From positions 196,068 to 260,067 of IMG/VR virus record IMGVR_UViG_3300017963_000190: DNA of 64,000 bases; one strand, written 5' to 3'. The notes under the pieces were generated by a model. That model saw only the letters and a list, made by a program, of their open reading frames with translations. It had not been told where the DNA came from and did no database searches. The position numbers and the translations under genes are program-made. Shown piece by piece: positions 8,232 to 61,847 of this stretch; position 1 is the stretch's first letter; every line of letters starts with the position of its first letter.

Positions 8232-10454
8232 ATGCCCAAATATCTGTTCCATACGACCTCATTACCAGGGTTGCTCTCTATTATGGGCAGCCACTCTGTG
8301 CAATCAGAGGCGCCATTTGTATCTTTTTCTGAGATACCTCATGTGGGCGACATCAGCCACAATGATGTCGTCATTGTCTTCAAGCACTCCAAACTAGCTC
8401 CGCAGCTCCTGCAGGTGGACTACACAGAAGACTGGTACAACAAGCATCCCGAACAGGCAGCCTACGTTGCTGGTGAGGGGTGGTTGGAGCAGTTCATCTA
8501 TCCAGAAGAGTGCATCGACAAAGATGGGTTTGAGGACGAAGAGTGCATGGAGGAGGCGTACAAGGAGGGGGAGATTTCTTCCTTCCTATTTAAAAGCGAT
8601 GAGCGTGAGTGGGTGTCTAAGGAAGAAGACCATCCAGTAACCTTCGACCCAGAGGCGGTGGACCGGATCTTGGTGGTGGATGAACGTCAGGTGGACGCGG
8701 TGAAGGGCGCTCTGGAGGATGCCAACTTTGATCTTCCTGTGGATGTTCGGCAGGCGGGGGTACGCGTAGCATCGCCATCCCTTCCTTCTGGGGCAGGATT
8801 CCTCTTCACCGATGGTATTCGGATCCTACTCCTCAAACGCAGCATCGACAACGATGAAGCAGGCACGTGGGGTATTCCTGGCGGTGGTGTTTATAATGGC
8901 GAAACCCCACAGGATGGGGCCCTGCGTGAATGCATGGAGGAGATTGGTTCCGTACCACCGCACAGGATTCTGGATTGGTTTGTCTTCCAGTGCGATGATC
9001 CGCACTTCGGTACCTTCGAGTACACCACTTTTCTTGCGCAGGTAGAGCCAGCTTTTGTGGAGGGGTTCCTACCTGTGCTGGATCATGAGAGCACAGGGTG
9101 GGGTTGGTACGATGAAGAGGGGGTCAAAGCGCTCACTCTGCACCCCGGCCTTGACACGTTATTTGAGCACACCACCCCATTTTTCCAGCATATTGACAAC
9201 CGCACCGCGCAGACAGAAGAAGAGCTGCAGAAGCTGCCCATCGACGTGCTGGACCGCATGGCTTTTGGGGTAGTGGAGGGCGTCCAAGAACTTCCTGTAG
9301 GCGATATCAAGATCAAGTACGCTGACGACTACAACAACGCTGTGGCAGAGATTGAAGAGGGCTTGTGGGAAGGGAACGAGTCAGCGCTGGAGGAGCCGGT
9401 AGAGGTTTCTTTGGAGCGGGGCATCTATTGGCTGGAAGACGGTCACCATCGCTATGTAATGGCTAGAGGGTTGGGACGCGATACCATTTTGGCTGATCTG
9501 TCCATCAAGGACAATCCCGTGAGAGCGCTCATGCGACGGAATGCTATCGAGGAATCTGTGCAGTTACCACGTACCATTCGTTACCAGGGAGCAACGTATC
9601 AGGCTGTCACCGCAGGCCTTAGCACCGTATTATTGAACAGGGCTGTATCGGATGCTCAGAAGAAGCAGGAGCTGCGTCCGTACGTCGACCTGTTCATGAA
9701 GCAGTTAGGCCGAAAGGAATCCTACAAAAAGAATGCGGATAAAATCCTGTCTGCAGTAGAGGCCCTTTTAATGGCACCCTTCGCTCCGGCTGCAGAGTCT
9801 TCGGTGCATAGCGTGAAGGAATCAGTCAAGGCTTATGATCATCTGCAAAACCAAGTGAATGCCCTAGAGGCGTCCATGGGGGACGATCCCCAAGAGGCGA
9901 TCAGTAAGATACAGAAGCTATTCGACGACTTCTACGCTGAGACGCTCCCCAAAGTCCCAGCTTGGCATAAGGCATTTGGCGAGACCGCCAAGGATTTACT
10001 TATCGAACCAGGACTGCTCCCAGCCTCCGCTCGGATGTTGTACTACCTGAAAAAGGCTTTAAAGGAAGCAGAGCGGCTCAAGCTCCTGAGTGATGAGGGA
10101 GAAGAGGTCGACAAAGATGAAGTCCGCGAAGCCTTGGATGAGATTCTGCGTGAGCCTGTTTGGGTGAAGGAAAAGCAGAAAGAAGAAGCTCGGCGTAAAA
10201 AAGAGCAAGCTCCAGCGAAAGTGCAGCAGGAGCTGGAGGGGTTGTTCCCAACAAAGGAGAAGGGAAAAGAGGCCCCGGTACCGCTAACGAAGCGGAAAGA
10301 GGAAGCACCCGTCCCGCTTGTTCGCCGTAAGAAAACTCCTCCTGAGCCAGTTCCTGCTAAACAGGAGCGCGTGCCCGAACCACAACCGGTAGCAGAGGGT
10401 GGTGGTTTCCTTAAGCTCGACCCAGCAATTGTTAGGAGGCTGGTTAATGTCTAG
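8232..10454 (+). CDS. multidomain protein: NUDIX hydrolase + ParB/Srx-like domain + PxxIxxxGxxY motif
   Basis: Nudix box WGIPGGGVYNGETPQDGALRECMEEIG; ParB-like YWLEDGHHR; PRTIRYQGATY. Confidence 0.8.
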   Translation: MPKYLFHTTSLPGLLSIMGSHSVQSEAPFVSFSEIPHVGDISHNDVVIVFKHSKLAPQLLQVDYTEDWYNKHPEQAAYVAGEGWLEQFIYPEECIDKDGFEDEECMEEAYKEGEISSFLFKSDEREWVSKEEDHPVTFDPEAVDRILVVDERQVDAVKGALEDANFDLPVDVRQAGVRVASPSLPSGAGFLFTDGIRILLLKRSIDNDEAGTWGIPGGGVYNGETPQDGALRECMEEIGSVPPHRILDWFVFQCDDPHFGTFEYTTFLAQVEPAFVEGFLPVLDHESTGWGWYDEEGVKALTLHPGLDTLFEHTTPFFQHIDNRTAQTEEELQKLPIDVLDRMAFGVVEGVQELPVGDIKIKYADDYNNAVAEIEEGLWEGNESALEEPVEVSLERGIYWLEDGHHRYVMARGLGRDTILADLSIKDNPVRALMRRNAIEESVQLPRTIRYQGATYQAVTAGLSTVLLNRAVSDAQKKQELRPYVDLFMKQLGRKESYKKNADKILSAVEALLMAPFAPAAESSVHSVKESVKAYDHLQNQVNALEASMGDDPQEAISKIQKLFDDFYAETLPKVPAWHKAFGETAKDLLIEPGLLPASARMLYYLKKALKEAERLKLLSDEGEEVDKDEVREALDEILREPVWVKEKQKEEARRKKEQAPAKVQQELEGLFPTKEKGKEAPVPLTKRKEEAPVPLVRRKKTPPEPVPAKQERVPEPQPVAEGGGFLKLDPAIVRRLVNV

Positions 10455-14425: not shown

Positions 14426-15472
14426 ATGCCTATTTACGCTGGAATAGGGAGCAGGAATCCGTCTAGCAGTGTTTCTGCTTTGGCCCGAAAAGTAGCCCGA
14501 TACCTCGCTGTTAGCGGGCATACCCTACGAACAGGCGCCGCAAAAGGAATCGACCAGATCATGGCCGAGGCAGCCTTGGAGGTAGGCGGCCCCGTAGATC
14601 TCTGCCTTCCATGGGATACTTTTTCGAGAGATTGGGTGCGGCGCATACGTGATCGGTTTGGATCGCTGGTCCAGCTGGAACCGTTGCTTAGTAGCGATGA
14701 AGAAGCATTCCACTCGGTACAAGCATTCCACCCAAATCCCGACGCACTGAAACGCAACGGTCTTCGGTTGCACGCCAGGAATTACCGAATTCTACATCCA
14801 ATCGGAGGAGGGCTTGTACGTTGCGTGGTAGCCGCACCTCGGAATAATAGTGGCGGTACCATGCAAGGCGTACGGATCGCCGAGACATTGCAGGTACCTG
14901 TTGTGCGGTTGGACCTAGTCCCAGCTATGGACGTCAAACGTTGGTTGGACAAACGCCTTGGAATGAAGAAGCCAAAAGGTGCAACTCTGCTACAGGCACA
15001 GCGCCATGTGCAAGAAGCACTAAAACCTGGCGCCGGGGCAATTGATTGTCCCTGCTGTAAACAGCGGGTCCAGCTCTACAGGCGGCGCTTAAACAGCGAG
15101 ATGGCGCGCTGGCTGATCCTTCTATCCAGGGTGTTCCTGTCTAATGGGCGTAGGTGGGTAAGCGTTAAGGATTCACCTCTTAAAGAGACCCGCGGAGGGG
15201 ACTACGCCAAGCTGCAGCACTGGGGTTTAATCGAGCAGCGCCCAAACACTGATGAGAAGAAACGTACCTCAGGGTATTGGCGCCCAACTACAAAAGGGGT
15301 CAATTTCGCGAAGAACCGTACCAGGGTTCCTTCTCATATCTACATCTTCAACAACACAGTTTACGGGCAATCAGAAGAAACCGTTTCCATAGTAGACGCG
15401 CTAGGCGTGAAGTTCGACTACCGGGATGTAGTGCGCACAGCATTGAAGAGTAATACAAAGGAAAAGAAATGA
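14426..15472 (+). CDS. SLOG/DprA-like Rossmann domain fused to a Zn-ribbon/winged-helix-like domain
   Basis: YAGIGSR, LRTGAAKGID, SGGTMQGVRIA; CPCC. Confidence 0.7.
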   Translation: MPIYAGIGSRNPSSSVSALARKVARYLAVSGHTLRTGAAKGIDQIMAEAALEVGGPVDLCLPWDTFSRDWVRRIRDRFGSLVQLEPLLSSDEEAFHSVQAFHPNPDALKRNGLRLHARNYRILHPIGGGLVRCVVAAPRNNSGGTMQGVRIAETLQVPVVRLDLVPAMDVKRWLDKRLGMKKPKGATLLQAQRHVQEALKPGAGAIDCPCCKQRVQLYRRRLNSEMARWLILLSRVFLSNGRRWVSVKDSPLKETRGGDYAKLQHWGLIEQRPNTDEKKRTSGYWRPTTKGVNFAKNRTRVPSHIYIFNNTVYGQSEETVSIVDALGVKFDYRDVVRTALKSNTKEKK

Positions 15473-15766: not shown

Positions 15767-16549
15767 ATGGACGCAAAAAGCAAGGCTGAGTGGCTACGGA
15801 AGCACAGATACTGGTCATACAAAGAAATCTCTGTCCACCTTGGAGTTCCTAAGTCTACTGTTTGTTACTGGCTACGCGACATTCAGCTTACGGCGGTGGA
15901 GCAGGCAGAGATTGGCGCTAGAACTAAGGAGCTAGTTAAGCATGCTGCGATTGCATCAAACAAGCGCAGAAAGGGAGAGAAAAGGCGTTACGCGCGCAGA
16001 CGTTCTAGTGCTACTCGTGGGCCCAGCCACGCAGAGCGTGCTAGGGAGAACAGGCAGCATTTATTGACCAAAAGTAGGGAGCGTGTAAAGTTGCATGGAT
16101 TACAGATGACCCAAGATTCCTTGGCTTTAGTAGGAGCTGCTATTTACTGGGCTGAGGGGGAGAAAATCGGCAGTATGGCTTTATCCAACTCCGACCCTGC
16201 GCTCCTACAGTTGTATGTTCGTTGGTTGACTACTATTTTACGTGTTGATCCAAGAAGGTTATCTTTTAGGGTGTCCGCTCACTTAGATTGCTCCTTTTCT
16301 CACAGTGAGCTGGAAGAATACTGGCGTACTGTACTGTCTATGCCTAAGGCTGTATTTGAGAAGCCGTATTCGATTCCTATTAAAAATAAGAAGAGGAGAA
16401 AAAAGTTGAAGCATGGAATGCTTCGTGTGCGCGTTTCGCGCCCATTGCGTAGTCTTGCTAAGTATTACTCGGTAGCTGAGATCCTTGGTGTGGACGCCGA
16501 GTCCTTGTTTGTAAACCGTGTATCACCATTACACGTTTTGGAGGAGTGA
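15767..16549 (+). CDS. HTH + LAGLIDADG-like putative homing endonuclease
   Basis: SYKEISVHLGVPKSTVCYW HTH; VGAAIYWAEGEK...LSNSDP; paralog at 58129. Confidence 0.7.
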   Translation: MDAKSKAEWLRKHRYWSYKEISVHLGVPKSTVCYWLRDIQLTAVEQAEIGARTKELVKHAAIASNKRRKGEKRRYARRRSSATRGPSHAERARENRQHLLTKSRERVKLHGLQMTQDSLALVGAAIYWAEGEKIGSMALSNSDPALLQLYVRWLTTILRVDPRRLSFRVSAHLDCSFSHSELEEYWRTVLSMPKAVFEKPYSIPIKNKKRRKKLKHGMLRVRVSRPLRSLAKYYSVAEILGVDAESLFVNRVSPLHVLEE

Positions 16550-16624
16550 CCGAATTGGCGAAAGTGCTTGGCTTGAAACCAAGTGTACCGAAAGGTACTG
16601 GGGGTTCGAATCCCTCCTCCTCCG
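16540..16624 (+). tRNA. tRNA-Ser(TGA), intact copy inside the cassette
   Basis: CTTGG-CT TGA AA-CCAAG; long V-arm. Confidence 0.92.
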
Positions 16625-16625
16625 T

Positions 16626-16675
16626 TTGAAAGCCATTGGGCGAAAGCCCCGGGGGTTCGAATCCCTCACCTGCCG
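16626..16675 (+). pseudogene. 3' half of the disrupted tRNA-Ser(TGA)
   Basis: TTGAAA-GCCAT, V-arm GGGC-GAAA-GCCC, T-arm, ACCTGCC-G complementary to GGCAGGT. Confidence 0.85.
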
Positions 16676-16689
16676 TTAAGGAGGCGAAG

Positions 16690-32895: not shown

Positions 32896-32965
32896 GGCCC
32901 TTCTTGTAGCTCAGCTGGTAGAGCATGGGACTCCGAGGTCGTGGGTTCGAGTCCCACCTGGCCCG
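32896..32965 (+). pseudogene. degenerate tRNA lacking an anticodon loop
   Basis: Canonical D-arm and T-arm; anticodon arm reduced to TGGGACTCCG; acceptor mispaired. Confidence 0.6.
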
Positions 32966-36644: not shown

Positions 36645-37112
36645 ATGACCGACGATTGGAAAGAAAGGGCAGCTTCTATTTTGCTTCCTGGAGAAGTGAT
36701 CCAGGAGCCTGAGAAGCCTAAACCAAAGAAAATCAAGCGTAGTAAGAAGAAGCAAAGTTCTAAGCGGGTGCCTACAAAGGGTGTTTTTTCTTACGAGTAT
36801 AATGAGAGCGATGATGGTCTTCTTATTAAGGGCCTTCAGCGAGCGCTAGACGTACCAGCGGATGGTATAATCGGGCCTCGTACACTAACTGCCTGGAAGA
36901 ATGCCTATGATGCAGATGGCGTTTTTATGGTGAAGAACAACACAAATGCCGCAGTTATTTTGCCTGGCGTAGAGATTACGTTGGATCCTTTTGAGGAACG
37001 TATAATTGTAGTACCCAGTTCTGTGTGGCAGAACGATAATTTACTTGCAATGGTACGGAGAGCTTACATCAGCATTGCTCCAGTTCCTGTACCAGAAAAA
37101 TGGTGGCTATAG
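36645..37112 (+). CDS. peptidoglycan-binding domain protein
   Basis: LQRALDVPADGIIGPRT. Confidence 0.7.
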   Translation: MTDDWKERAASILLPGEVIQEPEKPKPKKIKRSKKKQSSKRVPTKGVFSYEYNESDDGLLIKGLQRALDVPADGIIGPRTLTAWKNAYDADGVFMVKNNTNAAVILPGVEITLDPFEERIIVVPSSVWQNDNLLAMVRRAYISIAPVPVPEKWWL

Positions 37113-37151
37113 CTCAGTTGGTTAGAGCGCTGGTTTGTGGCATCAGAGGTC
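37102..37151 (+). pseudogene. 5' part of a disrupted tRNA-His(GTG)
   Basis: G-1 GTGGCTA, D-arm, CTGGT-TTGTGGC-ATCAG, AGGTC, then no T-arm. Confidence 0.8.
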
Positions 37152-37181
37152 ATTAAAACTCTTGACGGCCACCCTTATTAT

Positions 37182-49636: not shown

Positions 49637-49665
49637 GCAACACATGCAATTATTTTACAAGTTGA

Positions 49666-49738
49666 CGCGGACAGAAGTAATCGAAACTTCAACTGCGTGA
49701 CCCTTAACCACACTGTGATACCTTTTCACCATGTCCGC
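49666..49738 (-). ncRNA. atypical tRNA-like RNA (loop TTAAGGG)
   Basis: GCGGACA/TGTCCGC acceptor, D-arm, T-arm GAAGT-TTCGATT-ACTTC. Confidence 0.6.
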
Positions 49739-49743
49739 AAAAT

Positions 49744-49837
49744 TGCCGGGGACAGGACTTGAACCTGTAGTCGTCTGCGCAAGGGAACGTCTTCCCCATT
49801 GCTCTGAAACGAGTTCTGCCAGTTGAACTACCCCGAC
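49744..49837 (-). ncRNA. tRNA-like RNA with an enlarged anticodon arm
   Basis: Canonical acceptor, D- and T-arms; ~40-nt extended anticodon-arm hairpin. Confidence 0.65.
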
Positions 49838-59353: not shown

Positions 59354-59572
59354 GAGAATCCATGGCCAGTAGCTACCTCCCAAAGTGGAAACGGTTTTTG
59401 ATCCAGTATACTCCTTTCCTTTTCAAGAAGTGCCCAGGCGGCAACAACCACTGGTTCTGGGACAGGCTGTGCTTTTGCCAATGTGGTGAGCACCACTCAG
59501 ATTGGCACGGAGGCATTTACGATTTTCAAACGAAGCGTGAGTACCAGCATTGCTCGCGTTGCAAATAATTTT

Positions 59573-59856
59573 TGTGCACGGTAGTTGGCTTAAAGGCAGC
59601 CATCTTAAGAGTGAGGCGAAGACCTGCTGCCAGGATTCTGGATAGCGGACTTGAATACGGTTACTGCGGTGAATTACAAGTAGCCCAAACGCTATCGTCC
59701 GGTCGAGCCGAAAGTGCGAGCTCGCTACTCGCACGAAGAGGTTCGGGGGTAGCTCCCCCTAGACCGCCGAGGCAGGAGTATTCTCGGTTAAGTGTGAAGG
59801 CACCCCGGAGACGGTAAGGCCTGATCCCTCTTTGGCGTAATAGCACGCCGTGCACA
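59573..59856 (+). ncRNA. 23S rRNA L11-binding domain (H43/H44) mimic with a ~210-nt insertion
   Basis: GTTGGCTTAAAGGCAGCCATCTTAA...GCGTAATAGC closed by TGTGCACGG/CCGTGCACA. Confidence 0.75.
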
Positions 59857-59887
59857 TTTTTCTTTTTGTGGTAAGGAGTAATAGATC

Positions 59888-60148
59888 ATGGCTAACAATC
59901 AACCACAACCTTCCATGCTTTTTGTAGTCCTCGATGAAAGCGAGGCGATCCAAGTACAAAAGCACGGTTTGGGTACCGGAGTTATGTGCCATAAGACCCC
60001 TCCAAAGCGCTGGCCTTTGCATAAAGTGGGCGCTGTGATCCGCTTGGACCAATCCCACGCGTGGGCGAAGAAAGTGAACAGCCATGTTTGGGCACTCCAG
60101 GGGCAGGTGCACCCCGACCATATCAGTCTTTACGTACAGGAAAAATAG
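59888..60148 (+). CDS. hypothetical protein
   Basis: AAGGAG SD. Confidence 0.5.
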   Translation: MANNQPQPSMLFVVLDESEAIQVQKHGLGTGVMCHKTPPKRWPLHKVGAVIRLDQSHAWAKKVNSHVWALQGQVHPDHISLYVQEK

Positions 60149-61009: not shown

Positions 61010-61235
61010 TTGTTATGGGCACCATCAGAAAAATACCCAAGTTTCTAGGCGACGGCGTGTGCATCTTCCCCGCGTTGGAGTCGGAAAAGACGGCCTACGC
61101 CAACGCTGCTCCTCTTGCTGATCAATGCGCTGTCTGCGACGGACGCGGTCAAATAATCGTGAGCAAGCCTAAGCGTCACCTGGCGTACATGACTTGCCAC
61201 GGATGTCGCGGAAAAGGCGTCAAAAAAGAATCCAC

Positions 61236-61847
61236 ATGAAGACGTACCCAAGCATTCCTTATCCAGGACGTAAAGGTGTCGGTGAACGCCTGCATACCTT
61301 TGCCAAGCTGGATGGGTCCAACCTCCGTTTCGAGTGGAGCAAGAAGCGGGGTTGGCATCGTTTTGGTACGCGCAAGCGGCTCATCGATGCCAGCACTGAG
61401 CTATTCGGGGAAGCCATTCCTCTTTTTATGGGAACGCTAGCAGATCCCATCGGGCGCATTGCCACCGACAAAAAATGGCAGAGTGTCATCGTCTTCTGCG
61501 AGTTCTGGGGAGCTGAGACCCTGGGTGGCTGGCATGTGGAAGGTGATCCAAAGCATCTTACTGTAATCGACGTCAATACCTACAAGAAAGGTTTTCTGCT
61601 GCCCACTGAGTTCTTGAAGCTCTTTGGCAGGTATGGACCGAACTATCTGGGCTACTTTACGTGGTCTCCTGGGTTTCTCCAGCAACTGCAAGACGGGGAG
61701 ATAGAAGACGCGGGTTTTGAAGGCGTCGTGGGAAAAGGCACGAAGGGCAAGAAAATAATCCGCTATAAGTATAAGACACAAGCCTGGAAAGACGCGGTCC
61801 TCGCTCGGCATGGAGAAGAGCTCGGGCGCAGGATCATCAATAGTTGA
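61236..61847 (+). CDS. putative ATP-dependent RNA ligase
   Basis: YPSI, AKLDGSN (motif I), FCEFWG, FEGVVGK, YKYKT. Confidence 0.75.
   Translation: MKTYPSIPYPGRKGVGERLHTFAKLDGSNLRFEWSKKRGWHRFGTRKRLIDASTELFGEAIPLFMGTLADPIGRIATDKKWQSVIVFCEFWGAETLGGWHVEGDPKHLTVIDVNTYKKGFLLPTEFLKLFGRYGPNYLGYFTWSPGFLQQLQDGEIEDAGFEGVVGKGTKGKKIIRYKYKTQAWKDAVLARHGEELGRRIINS

Follow-up and report, generated by a model that had tools for sequence, protein, structure and literature searches.

A phage-borne RNA family that copies the fold of the L11-binding GTPase-associated centre of 23S rRNA

Introduction

The GTPase-associated centre (GAC) of bacterial 23S ribosomal RNA (rRNA; E. coli positions 1051-1108) comprises the end of helix 42 (H42) together with H43 and H44. 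Ribosomal protein L11 (uL11) binds an isolated 58-nt fragment of this RNA tightly, and its C-terminal domain reads the fold. On the ribosome, A1067 contacts thiostrepton, EF-G and the elbow of transfer RNA (tRNA). uL11 is needed for the activation of RelA, which is lost in rplK (relC) mutants, and it also affects the activity of release factor 1. Two bases of the H43 loop make tertiary contacts with pairs of H44, C1072 with C1092-G1099 and G1071 with G1091-C1100 (PMC2952862), and the U1060-A1088 pair is hydrogen-bonded by Gly130-Thr131 of L11 (PMC2175356). Here we describe a candidate non-coding RNA (ncRNA) element of about 285 nt, located at positions 59573-59856 on the + strand of a 64,000-nt stretch of the IMG/VR virus record IMGVR_UViG_3300017963_000190 (positions 196,068 to 260,067 of the record); the whole stretch is called the window hereafter. 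It is almost certain that the element copies the fold of the L11-binding GAC and that it belongs to a real and widespread family of phage ncRNAs.

Several RNAs imitate the nucleic-acid ligand of a protein and act as sponges or decoys, among them 6S RNA (for RNA polymerase), CsrB (for CsrA) and the phage RNA anti-CRISPRs, which imitate the repeats of crRNAs. The logic that we propose for the phage element would be analogous, in that a host protein would be titrated by an abundant RNA that reproduces the protein's natural binding site, but the proposed target is a ribosomal protein or another ligand of the GTPase centre, and what is copied is a three-dimensional rRNA fold rather than a simple sequence or duplex. 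The tRNA region of phage T4 carries small stable RNAs that are comparable in location and in presumed co-processing. GOLLD and ROOL resemble the element in their phage association, in their sites by tRNA clusters and in being presumably co-processed as stable RNAs (PMC12990946). Unlike the element, neither these two nor the T4 small RNAs are rRNA mimics, and the element in the window has no sequence or structure match to any Rfam family. Extraribosomal copies of ribosomal-protein sites are also found in the leaders of ribosomal-protein operons, such as the L1 site in the L11 operon mRNA and the L10(L12)4 leader (PMC10931766). Those leaders are cis-acting 5' untranslated regions of cellular operons, whereas the phage element stands alone among tRNA genes. 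The L11 operon itself is controlled by L1, and the review describes no L11-specific leader (PMC10931766).

The closest known counterpart of the family is the 23S GAC itself. The two share the order of the helices, the loop sequences, the lone pair 1082:1086 (which cannot form as such in the window copy), the contacts of 1071/1072 with 1091-1092/1099-1100, U1060 and A1088, and the G1087-C1102 pair. They differ in that the phage element is a free-standing gene with no other rRNA, always carries an insert at 1090/1091 and sometimes another at 1077/1078, and has an arbitrary closing helix where H42 beyond the terminal stem (Kt-42, the L10 site) would be; in addition, A1067, 1096 and 1097 are free to vary in the phage element.

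Results

A GAC-like element in the window

With the RefSeq 23S gene of E. coli as reference (L137:1300-1360), the segment 59584-59604 differs from the H43 21-mer at only two positions, G1068A and A1070G, both in the hairpin loop. It is the sole such match in the window, where 0.01 would be expected by chance. The H43 motif followed by GCGUAAUAGC 200-230 nt further on occurs once in the window and in none of 100 shuffles. An initial reading of the window from its letters alone (the sequence-only reading) had stated that no other rRNA lies nearby, and this is borne out, since Rfam searches (at the gathering threshold and at E<=0.5) and blastn against 23S rRNA found no further rRNA-like sequence in the window.

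The comparison with Rfam that had been suggested as a check gave a divided answer. The window copy, too diverged when taken alone, has no match to the Rfam large-subunit (LSU) rRNA model at E<=10, whereas the canonical family member L125 matches LSU_rRNA_bacteria exactly at H42-H44 (local match at model positions 1082-1155, 33 bits, E 1.4e-8) and is 100% identical over 36 nt to the 23S rRNA of all 5,426 E. coli genomes. The significance of the window copy comes instead from the family model described below, which scores it at 54.8 bits (E 2.5e-16) and places the whole element at 59571-59861 as a single copy. An identical element is present in the IMG/VR contigs L006 and L007 (73 and 260 kb).

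Neither a genuine 23S gene nor a recent copy of host ribosomal DNA (rDNA) fits these elements, as the junction with the insert is found in no rRNA and the closing helix is of arbitrary sequence. Moreover, gammaproteobacterial phages carry GAGUG where the rRNA of E. coli has GAAAG, which argues that the members are not recent host copies.

Rfam 15 holds no family for the element, either at the gathering threshold or at E<=10 around the site, with GOLLD, ROOL, RNase P and the group I/II introns among the models covered. A match to IMES-2 within the insert reached 14.8 bits where 54.7 are required (E 0.26) and was taken as chance, and ARAGORN found no transfer-messenger RNA. No prior description was found in the searchable full-text literature on phage, the GAC, L11/uL11 and rRNA mimics, a body of text that leaves most subscription journals outside, and a large survey of candidate structured viral RNAs reports no overlap with rRNA predictions (PMC10690425). 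The family is apparently uncatalogued, and the possibility, raised with the sequence-only reading, that the motif is an already known one did not materialise in Rfam 15 or in the literature covered.

A widespread phage family

Pattern scans of IMG/VR and GTDB genomes, in which an H43 motif had to be followed by an H44 motif within 600 nt, gave at least 124 distinct sequences. The elements are 115-430 nt long and their inserts 57-377 nt. The members are located in IMG/VR phage contigs, in contigs of metagenome-assembled genomes (MAGs) with phage genes and, unannotated, in cultured phages. When the element was used as query in a sensitive blastn search, parts of it were matched within the tRNA regions of four cultured phages, at sites left unannotated: Pseudomonas phages UNO-G1W1, Astolliot and pf16, and Aeromonas phage 4_4572. 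Another blastn search found unannotated copies in Rak2-like jumbo phages, namely GAP32, CBB, BF, fHe-Yen9-03/04 and phages of Erwinia; other carriers are the Xanthomonas phages XacN1, XbC2 and XaC1 and the Paenibacillus phage Pd_22F. In the GenBank records of the carrier phages the site is either blank or occupied by a spurious small open reading frame (ORF). The scan of GTDB genomes returned about as many 19-mer matches as chance predicts, and only 22 of 110 passed the two-motif filter; these 22 members lie mostly on MAG contigs, and the ones without tRNAs that were checked have a portal, major-head, helicase or exonuclease gene beside them. By all appearances, the whole family is phage-borne.

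The members share a common design. From 5' to 3', the consensus consists of an arbitrary closing helix of about nine pairs, G-G-(A/G)-A-N-G-U-N, GGC-UUAGAAGCA-GCC, AUCNUUUAAAGAGU, an insert helix that opens with G and closes with C (57-377 nt), UUUG, GC-GUAAYA-GC, ACAC and the 3' strand of the closing helix. When the insert is taken out, what is left is the bacterial 23S consensus for H42-H44, and the nine-nt loop of H43, UUAGAAGCA, is identical in the family consensus and in E. coli. In every member an insert of at least 57 nt is found at the same point (1090/1091), with an invariant G-C base pair. About ten members (L140, L186/L200, L169, L176, L222, L197, L203, L184, L102 and L238) have a second hairpin insert at 1077/1078, in the H43-like internal loop. 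The inserts fall into unrelated classes; a 3' hairpin module, with flanking pairs that covary, is common to 28 of 122, the window copy included. Because the insert junction is common to all members and absent from rRNA, we infer that the family has a single old origin and did not arise by repeated capture from hosts.

A covariance model was built from 22 short members. Second copies were detected with it in L185 (in tandem), L199 and L022, and two differing copies are kept in L003, L185 and L199.

Covariation and tertiary contacts

Covariation among homologs, named as a check with the sequence-only reading, turned out clearly positive. In a model-based alignment of 115 hits, 94.3% of the cells at paired positions are paired, compared with 71.3% in shuffles. 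The covariation score is 0.494, against 0.125 in shuffles (none of 500 reached the observed value) and 0.04-0.14 with slid partners, and double changes are found in 16 of the 20 pairs. Across the family, the stems of H43 (GGC/GCC, and the lower stem 1057-1059/1079-1081) are 91-100% paired, with compensatory changes. The G-U pairs in the helices fit the strand of the element only.

A second, anchored alignment of 100 canonical members, to which the counts that follow refer, resolves individual pairs. The closing helix has four to six types of Watson-Crick pair at every position. Four types occur at pair 1058-1080, where 98% of the members are paired. Pair 1057-1081 alternates between A-U and C-G and 1062-1076 between G-C and A-U, and the first three pairs of the insert helix covary. 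The lone pair 1082:1086, also marked in the structure line of the Rfam LSU model, is U-A in 49 members, C-G in 33 and A-U in 10, and is thus 92% paired.

The contact between the two hairpins is also kept by joint change. All canonical members have C1072 together with C1092-G1099. U1092-A1099 is found in only three copies, all of which have U1072 (L003 ~1046-1362, L185 4094-4338 and L199 2172-2367); these are second, divergent copies in phages that also have a canonical one beside them. The alternation between C(C-G) and U(U-A) is the one from which Conn, Gutell and Draper reportedly deduced, in 1998, that rRNAs contain this triple.

G1087 and C1102 occur without exception in the 100 canonical members, C1102 being fixed by the search pattern, and the H44 helix to which they belong is interrupted by the insert. 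Near H44, RNAalifold proposes an alternative (U239-A253, G240-C252) to the rRNA-like pairs G1087-C1102 and U1090-A1101; the columns concerned are invariant and show no covariation that would separate the two. The A found in place of the linker G in two members (L134 and L136) fits the rRNA-like pairing better than the RNAalifold alternative.

Taken together, it is strongly supported that the fold is under selection, as compensatory changes preserve its helices as well as two tertiary interactions of the GAC. In structural terms, the sequence-only reading of the element as a stand-alone mimic of 23S H42-H44 is upheld by the existence of the family, the covarying helices, the two tertiary interactions and the LSU match of L125. 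The roles that it suggested, namely sequestration of L11 with damping of RelA, a decoy for toxins or a scaffold for translation factors, stay hypothetical.

Fold of the window copy

The element in the window lies in a 319-nt gap between two + strand ORFs at 59362-59568 and 59888-60148. Its closing helix (P1), which corresponds to the end of 23S H42, pairs 59573-59581 with the complementary strand 59848-59856 through nine Watson-Crick pairs, exactly as the sequence-only reading had it. The H43-like hairpin at 59582-59606, in which 19 of 21 bases are those of E. coli 23S, has a lower stem with the pairs A59583-U59605 and G59584-C59604, an internal loop with U59585 (equivalent to U1060) and U59586, an upper stem of 59587-59589 with 59599-59601, and a nine-base loop UUAAAGGCA at 59590-59598 in which A59592 corresponds to A1067. 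It is followed by AAGAGU (59607-59612), the joining strand and the 5' strand of lower H44, with A59610 in the place of A1088.

The insert domain of 218 nt (59613-59830) interrupts the 5' strand of H44 at the point that corresponds to 1090/1091. An insertion of about 210 nt had been correctly noticed beforehand, but had been assigned to the three-way junction. Its base helix (59613-59616 with 59827-59830) covaries family-wide, a long-range helix (59623-59628 with 59771-59776) is predicted, and its 3' hairpin (59799-59821), whose loop is GAGA (59808-59811) and which has a UAA bulge (59815-59817), is conserved in the subfamily. The interior fold of the insert in the window copy is a prediction, with z = -1.6. 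The GAGA hairpin of the window and an AGUA..GAGAGG-like stretch of pf16 were considered as mimics of the sarcin-ricin loop within the insert and rejected, as the loop in relatives is UAAC, UAAA or GAAA and its flanks lack the bulged-G motif.

A UUUG linker (59831-59834) leads from the insert to the H44-like hairpin at 59835-59844; no member found deviates from this linker, which is in part due to its inclusion in the search pattern. The hairpin consists of GC, the loop GUAAUA (A59839 being equivalent to A1095) and GC and is identical to E. coli 1091-1100. The earlier statement that both loops are preserved is therefore exact for H44, whereas the H43 loop carries the two substitutions given above. 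The 3' strand of lower H44 and the junction (59845-59847) have A1101, C1102 and a G in place of A1103. The bases of the tertiary contacts, 1071/1072, 1091/1092 and 1099/1100, are all present, at 59596-59597, 59835-59836 and 59843-59844.

The window copy is atypical: position 1057 is U, position 1103 is G, the register of the closing helix is shifted by one, and 3 nt are deleted; the combination of U1057 and G1103 recurs in L032. In an alignment with L009, L124, L005, L002 and L060, its joining strand is 3 nt shorter than the family consensus UUUAAAGAGU. The deletion removes the 1082:1086 triloop, and the lone pair cannot form as such in this copy.

One ORF of 81 codons overlaps the element in the window. 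Coding potential of the ORFs that overlap the element was considered and rejected, as 98 of 124 members have stops in all six frames and no ORF is conserved. The lengths of the 124 elements are evenly spread over the three classes modulo 3.

Conserved and variable positions

Among the 100 canonical members, U1060 (99%), G1071, C1072, A1073, A1077, A1084, A1085 and the stretch G1087-U1090 are near-invariant, and within this stretch G1087, A1088, G1089 and U1090 do not vary at all. A1067, in contrast to these, is A in 78 members, G in 17, C in 3 and U in 2, and positions 1061, 1068, 1070, 1096 and 1097 are variable too. The variation at A1067 argues against the binding of translation factors or thiostrepton. 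As far as the alignment can tell, the pattern of conservation favours recognition by L11, or recognition of the fold.

Genomic context

The window is part of a large uncultivated phage. Close cultured relatives were not found: there was no DNA match, none for a 930-aa protein, and the ligase gave only about 25% identity. Between 12.7 and 62.1 kb the window has 37-39 tRNA genes, nearly all on the + strand, and it further encodes a DNA ligase, a NUDIX protein, an RNA-ligase-like ORF, and portal-like and tail-like ORFs.

The arrangement of the element relative to tRNA genes is regular across the family. All 684 tRNAs in the member loci are co-oriented with the element; 85 of 123 loci bear tRNAs, and in 48 of 123 members a tRNA lies within 30 nt of the element. 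The gaps between element and tRNA are 0-20 nt on either side, like those between tRNAs. No preferred identity of the neighbouring tRNA, such as initiator Met, was seen in the member loci. For the window copy, the nearest tRNAs are 1.5 and 2.2 kb away, no promoter or intrinsic terminator stands out above background by the element, and a gene with a Shine-Dalgarno sequence begins 31 nt downstream. Since strand and spacing are those of tRNAs, the element appears to be a stable RNA that would be co-transcribed with tRNAs and released by the tRNA-processing enzymes. Within 2.5 kb there is no conserved partner protein gene on the same strand, the largest cluster being found in four loci. No ribosomal-protein gene was detected near the element by Pfam or PHROG match, the neighbours being tRNAs and small phage ORFs.

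Not every copy sits in a tRNA array, as is seen on the MAG contig L268, where the element (194-387), with no tRNA beside it, immediately precedes a portal gene (466-2577) and, after that, a major head gene. On the downstream side of the window element, at a distance of 1.3 kb, is an RNA-ligase-like ORF (61194-61847, +; phrog_548 E 3.5e-8, Pfam RNA_ligase E 1e-3), and in XacN1 the element directly follows an annotated 2'-5' RNA ligase gene (L321 534-1184). These neighbours may indicate a neighbourhood of RNA repair or translation protection. The ORF upstream of the window element (59362-59568, +), of 68 codons, ends 4 nt before it and is rich in Cys and His and possibly zinc-binding; Pfam and PHROG give no match for it.

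A link to stop-codon recoding was considered and dropped, because suppressor-type anticodons are present in only ten loci and absent from the window. The stop-reading anticodons, nine CUA and one UUA, are in L130, L160, L161, L166 (GAP32), L167, L185, L187, L217, L274 and L311.

Some further features of the tRNA region of the window are recorded here. Upstream of or within it are genes for a 740-aa protein with a central NUDIX domain (8232-10454, +) and for a 348-aa protein with an N-terminal DprA/SLOG-like region (14426-15472, +). The sole minus-strand tRNAs are Leu-AAG and a 94-nt Ser-AGA at 49664-49837. Three tRNA-like signals are seen by Rfam but not by ARAGORN: a truncated match of 53 nt by tRNA-Asn (32906-32958), a match of 29.5 bits just before tRNA-His (37103-37173), and a signal after tRNA-Ser (16628-16689) that gives rise to a sub-threshold sX4 match at 16525-16689.

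Discussion

What could be the role of a free-standing copy of the GAC in a phage? We propose, with a probability of about 45%, that the RNA is a molecular mimic that captures the uL11 of the host. The part shared by all members is the L11-binding fold, the rRNA consensus is kept in phages of many phyla and no phage partner accompanies the element, which would point to recognition by a universal host component. That this component could be uL11 is suggested by the observation that the U1060-A1088 pair, which the protein contacts, is kept while positions used by other ligands vary.

In the mechanism that we have in mind, the RNA would be transcribed from the + strand together with the phage tRNA genes and then cut out of the transcript. 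It would fold as the GAC, with the end of H42, H43 and H44 and a lineage-variable domain grafted into H44, and could draw exchangeable or newly made uL11 off the ribosomes. At a time when phage tRNAs flood the cell, signalling that depends on uL11 would then be dampened, the clearest case being the activation of RelA by uncharged tRNA, the trigger of the stringent response. A phage with dozens of tRNAs may risk having more uncharged tRNA, and an L11 sponge released from the same transcripts could keep the stringent response off.

Several points weigh against the capture of uL11. Both insertion sites, 1090/1091 and 1077/1078, are close in sequence to the U1060-A1088 site of L11, and the extra helices could block the protein. 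The 3' half of the element (1091-1104, the CUUUGG..GCRCAY stretch) was fixed by the search pattern, which by itself accounts for part of its invariance; the 5' half alone gives an unbiased picture. The window copy, with its 3-nt deletion, has the lowest score among the full-length hits of the family model, and with a degenerate joining strand its binding may be weaker or of another kind. To strip uL11 from tens of thousands of ribosomes in the course of a single infection cycle would take a high copy number of the RNA and fast exchange. Ribosomes poor in uL11 would also translate worse, which would be a cost to the phage.

Other roles have to be weighed against these arguments. One that we regard as unlikely, though worth serious thought, is that the RNA is a decoy: it would absorb a toxin aimed at the GAC (an ADP-ribosyltransferase, nuclease or methylase), or else an effector of host defence, and so shield the ribosomes. 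It would parallel the idea that phage tRNA arrays offset tRNA-targeting defences; the site in tRNA arrays and the RNA-ligase-type neighbours in the window and in XacN1 suggest a theme of translation protection, and the missing conservation of a phage protein partner agrees with it. A toxin directed at the GAC does exist, as Tre23 ADP-ribosylates H44 of 23S rRNA at 1095-1098 (PMC8661411), but it ignores purified 23S rRNA and ribosomes without tRNAs and factors, so that a naked mimic may not be a substrate, and positions 1096 and 1097 inside its target vary freely in the family. Likewise, Retron-Kva2 and RAZR are defence RNases that cut rRNA and tRNA during infection, but they are not specific to the GAC, and a literature search aimed at defence systems with that specificity found none. 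A decoy in large molar deficit to the ribosomes would in any case protect little, unless the effector prefers it. Rather less likely, in our estimate, the RNA could mimic the GTPase centre independently of protein, with the insert replacing L11 in locking the fold and the 1067/1095 loops titrating or relocating a ligand of the ribosomal factor site, for instance a GTPase (EF-G, IF2, RF3 or the like) or a tRNA elbow in the A/T or A/R state. The insert of at least 57 nt that every member carries at one point, together with its invariant G-C base pair and UUUG linker, would suit such a role, as would the position of both insertion sites on the flanks of the L11-binding place and the co-location with tRNAs, and isolated GAC fragments reportedly bind EF-G weakly. 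Yet A1067, which is central to the contacts with factors, tRNA elbow and thiostrepton, is replaced in 22% of the members, the unrelated insert classes (the one module being shared by 28 of 122) make a common L11-like packing role hard to see, and no mimic of the sarcin-ricin loop accompanies the element.

It is also conceivable, if improbable, that the variable insert is the working part, in which case the GAC-like core, with or without uL11, would be a mere nuclease-resistant scaffold for several lineage-specific functions. The inserts are large and variable and are partly conserved within subfamilies, with covariation, and two different copies are kept in L003, L185 and L199. The only features common to all members are nevertheless the GAC core and the insert junction, and the core is held to the bacterial rRNA consensus, tertiary contacts included, far beyond what a generic scaffold needs. 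The most remote of the alternatives, which we consider largely refuted already, is that the element is a nonfunctional, decaying fragment of host rDNA, the cis-regulatory leader of a downstream gene, or coding. The window copy, with a deletion in a conserved strand, an overlapping ORF of 81 codons and a gene with a Shine-Dalgarno sequence 31 nt downstream, could by itself give this impression. The family does not, because compensatory changes run through it, because all members have the derived insert junction that no rRNA has and GAGUG stands against the GAAAG of E. coli, because what comes next downstream is often a tRNA and not a conserved gene, and because stop codons in all six frames in 98 of 124 members and lengths not biased to multiples of three speak against coding.

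Going beyond the capture of uL11 as such, we tentatively picture the element, with slightly less confidence, as an ancient free-floating copy of the GAC, of single origin and carried by phages of many phyla. It would assemble with host uL11, and perhaps with ligands from the stalk or among the factors, into a particle that mimics the ribosome. Such a particle could rewire the stringent response, the recruitment of factors or the balance of release factors, or could disarm immunity that is aimed at ribosomes. If this holds, the element would stand for a new class of viral RNAs, whose action lies in the imitation of a three-dimensional rRNA domain.

If the element works as a mimic of the L11-binding centre, a virus would be seen for the first time to encode a trans-acting copy of a functional rRNA domain. 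Phages would then have a new way of manipulating translation in the host, in addition to the tRNAs, tmRNAs and ribosomal proteins that they carry. Tractable carriers are in culture, among them pf16 (of Pseudomonas putida), UNO-G1W1, Aeromonas phage 4_4572 and GAP32, and L11 with the GAC is among the best-characterised RNA-protein systems, with filter binding, thiostrepton, melting in dependence on Mg2+/K+ and crystallography as established assays. For work on RNA folding, the family offers more than 100 naturally occurring versions of the GAC fold, expanded by helices at two defined positions, and it accounts for stretches of 200-400 nt that had been left unannotated in the tRNA regions of many large phages. 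The link to RelA, if true, would connect the tRNA arrays of phages with the control of the stringent response.

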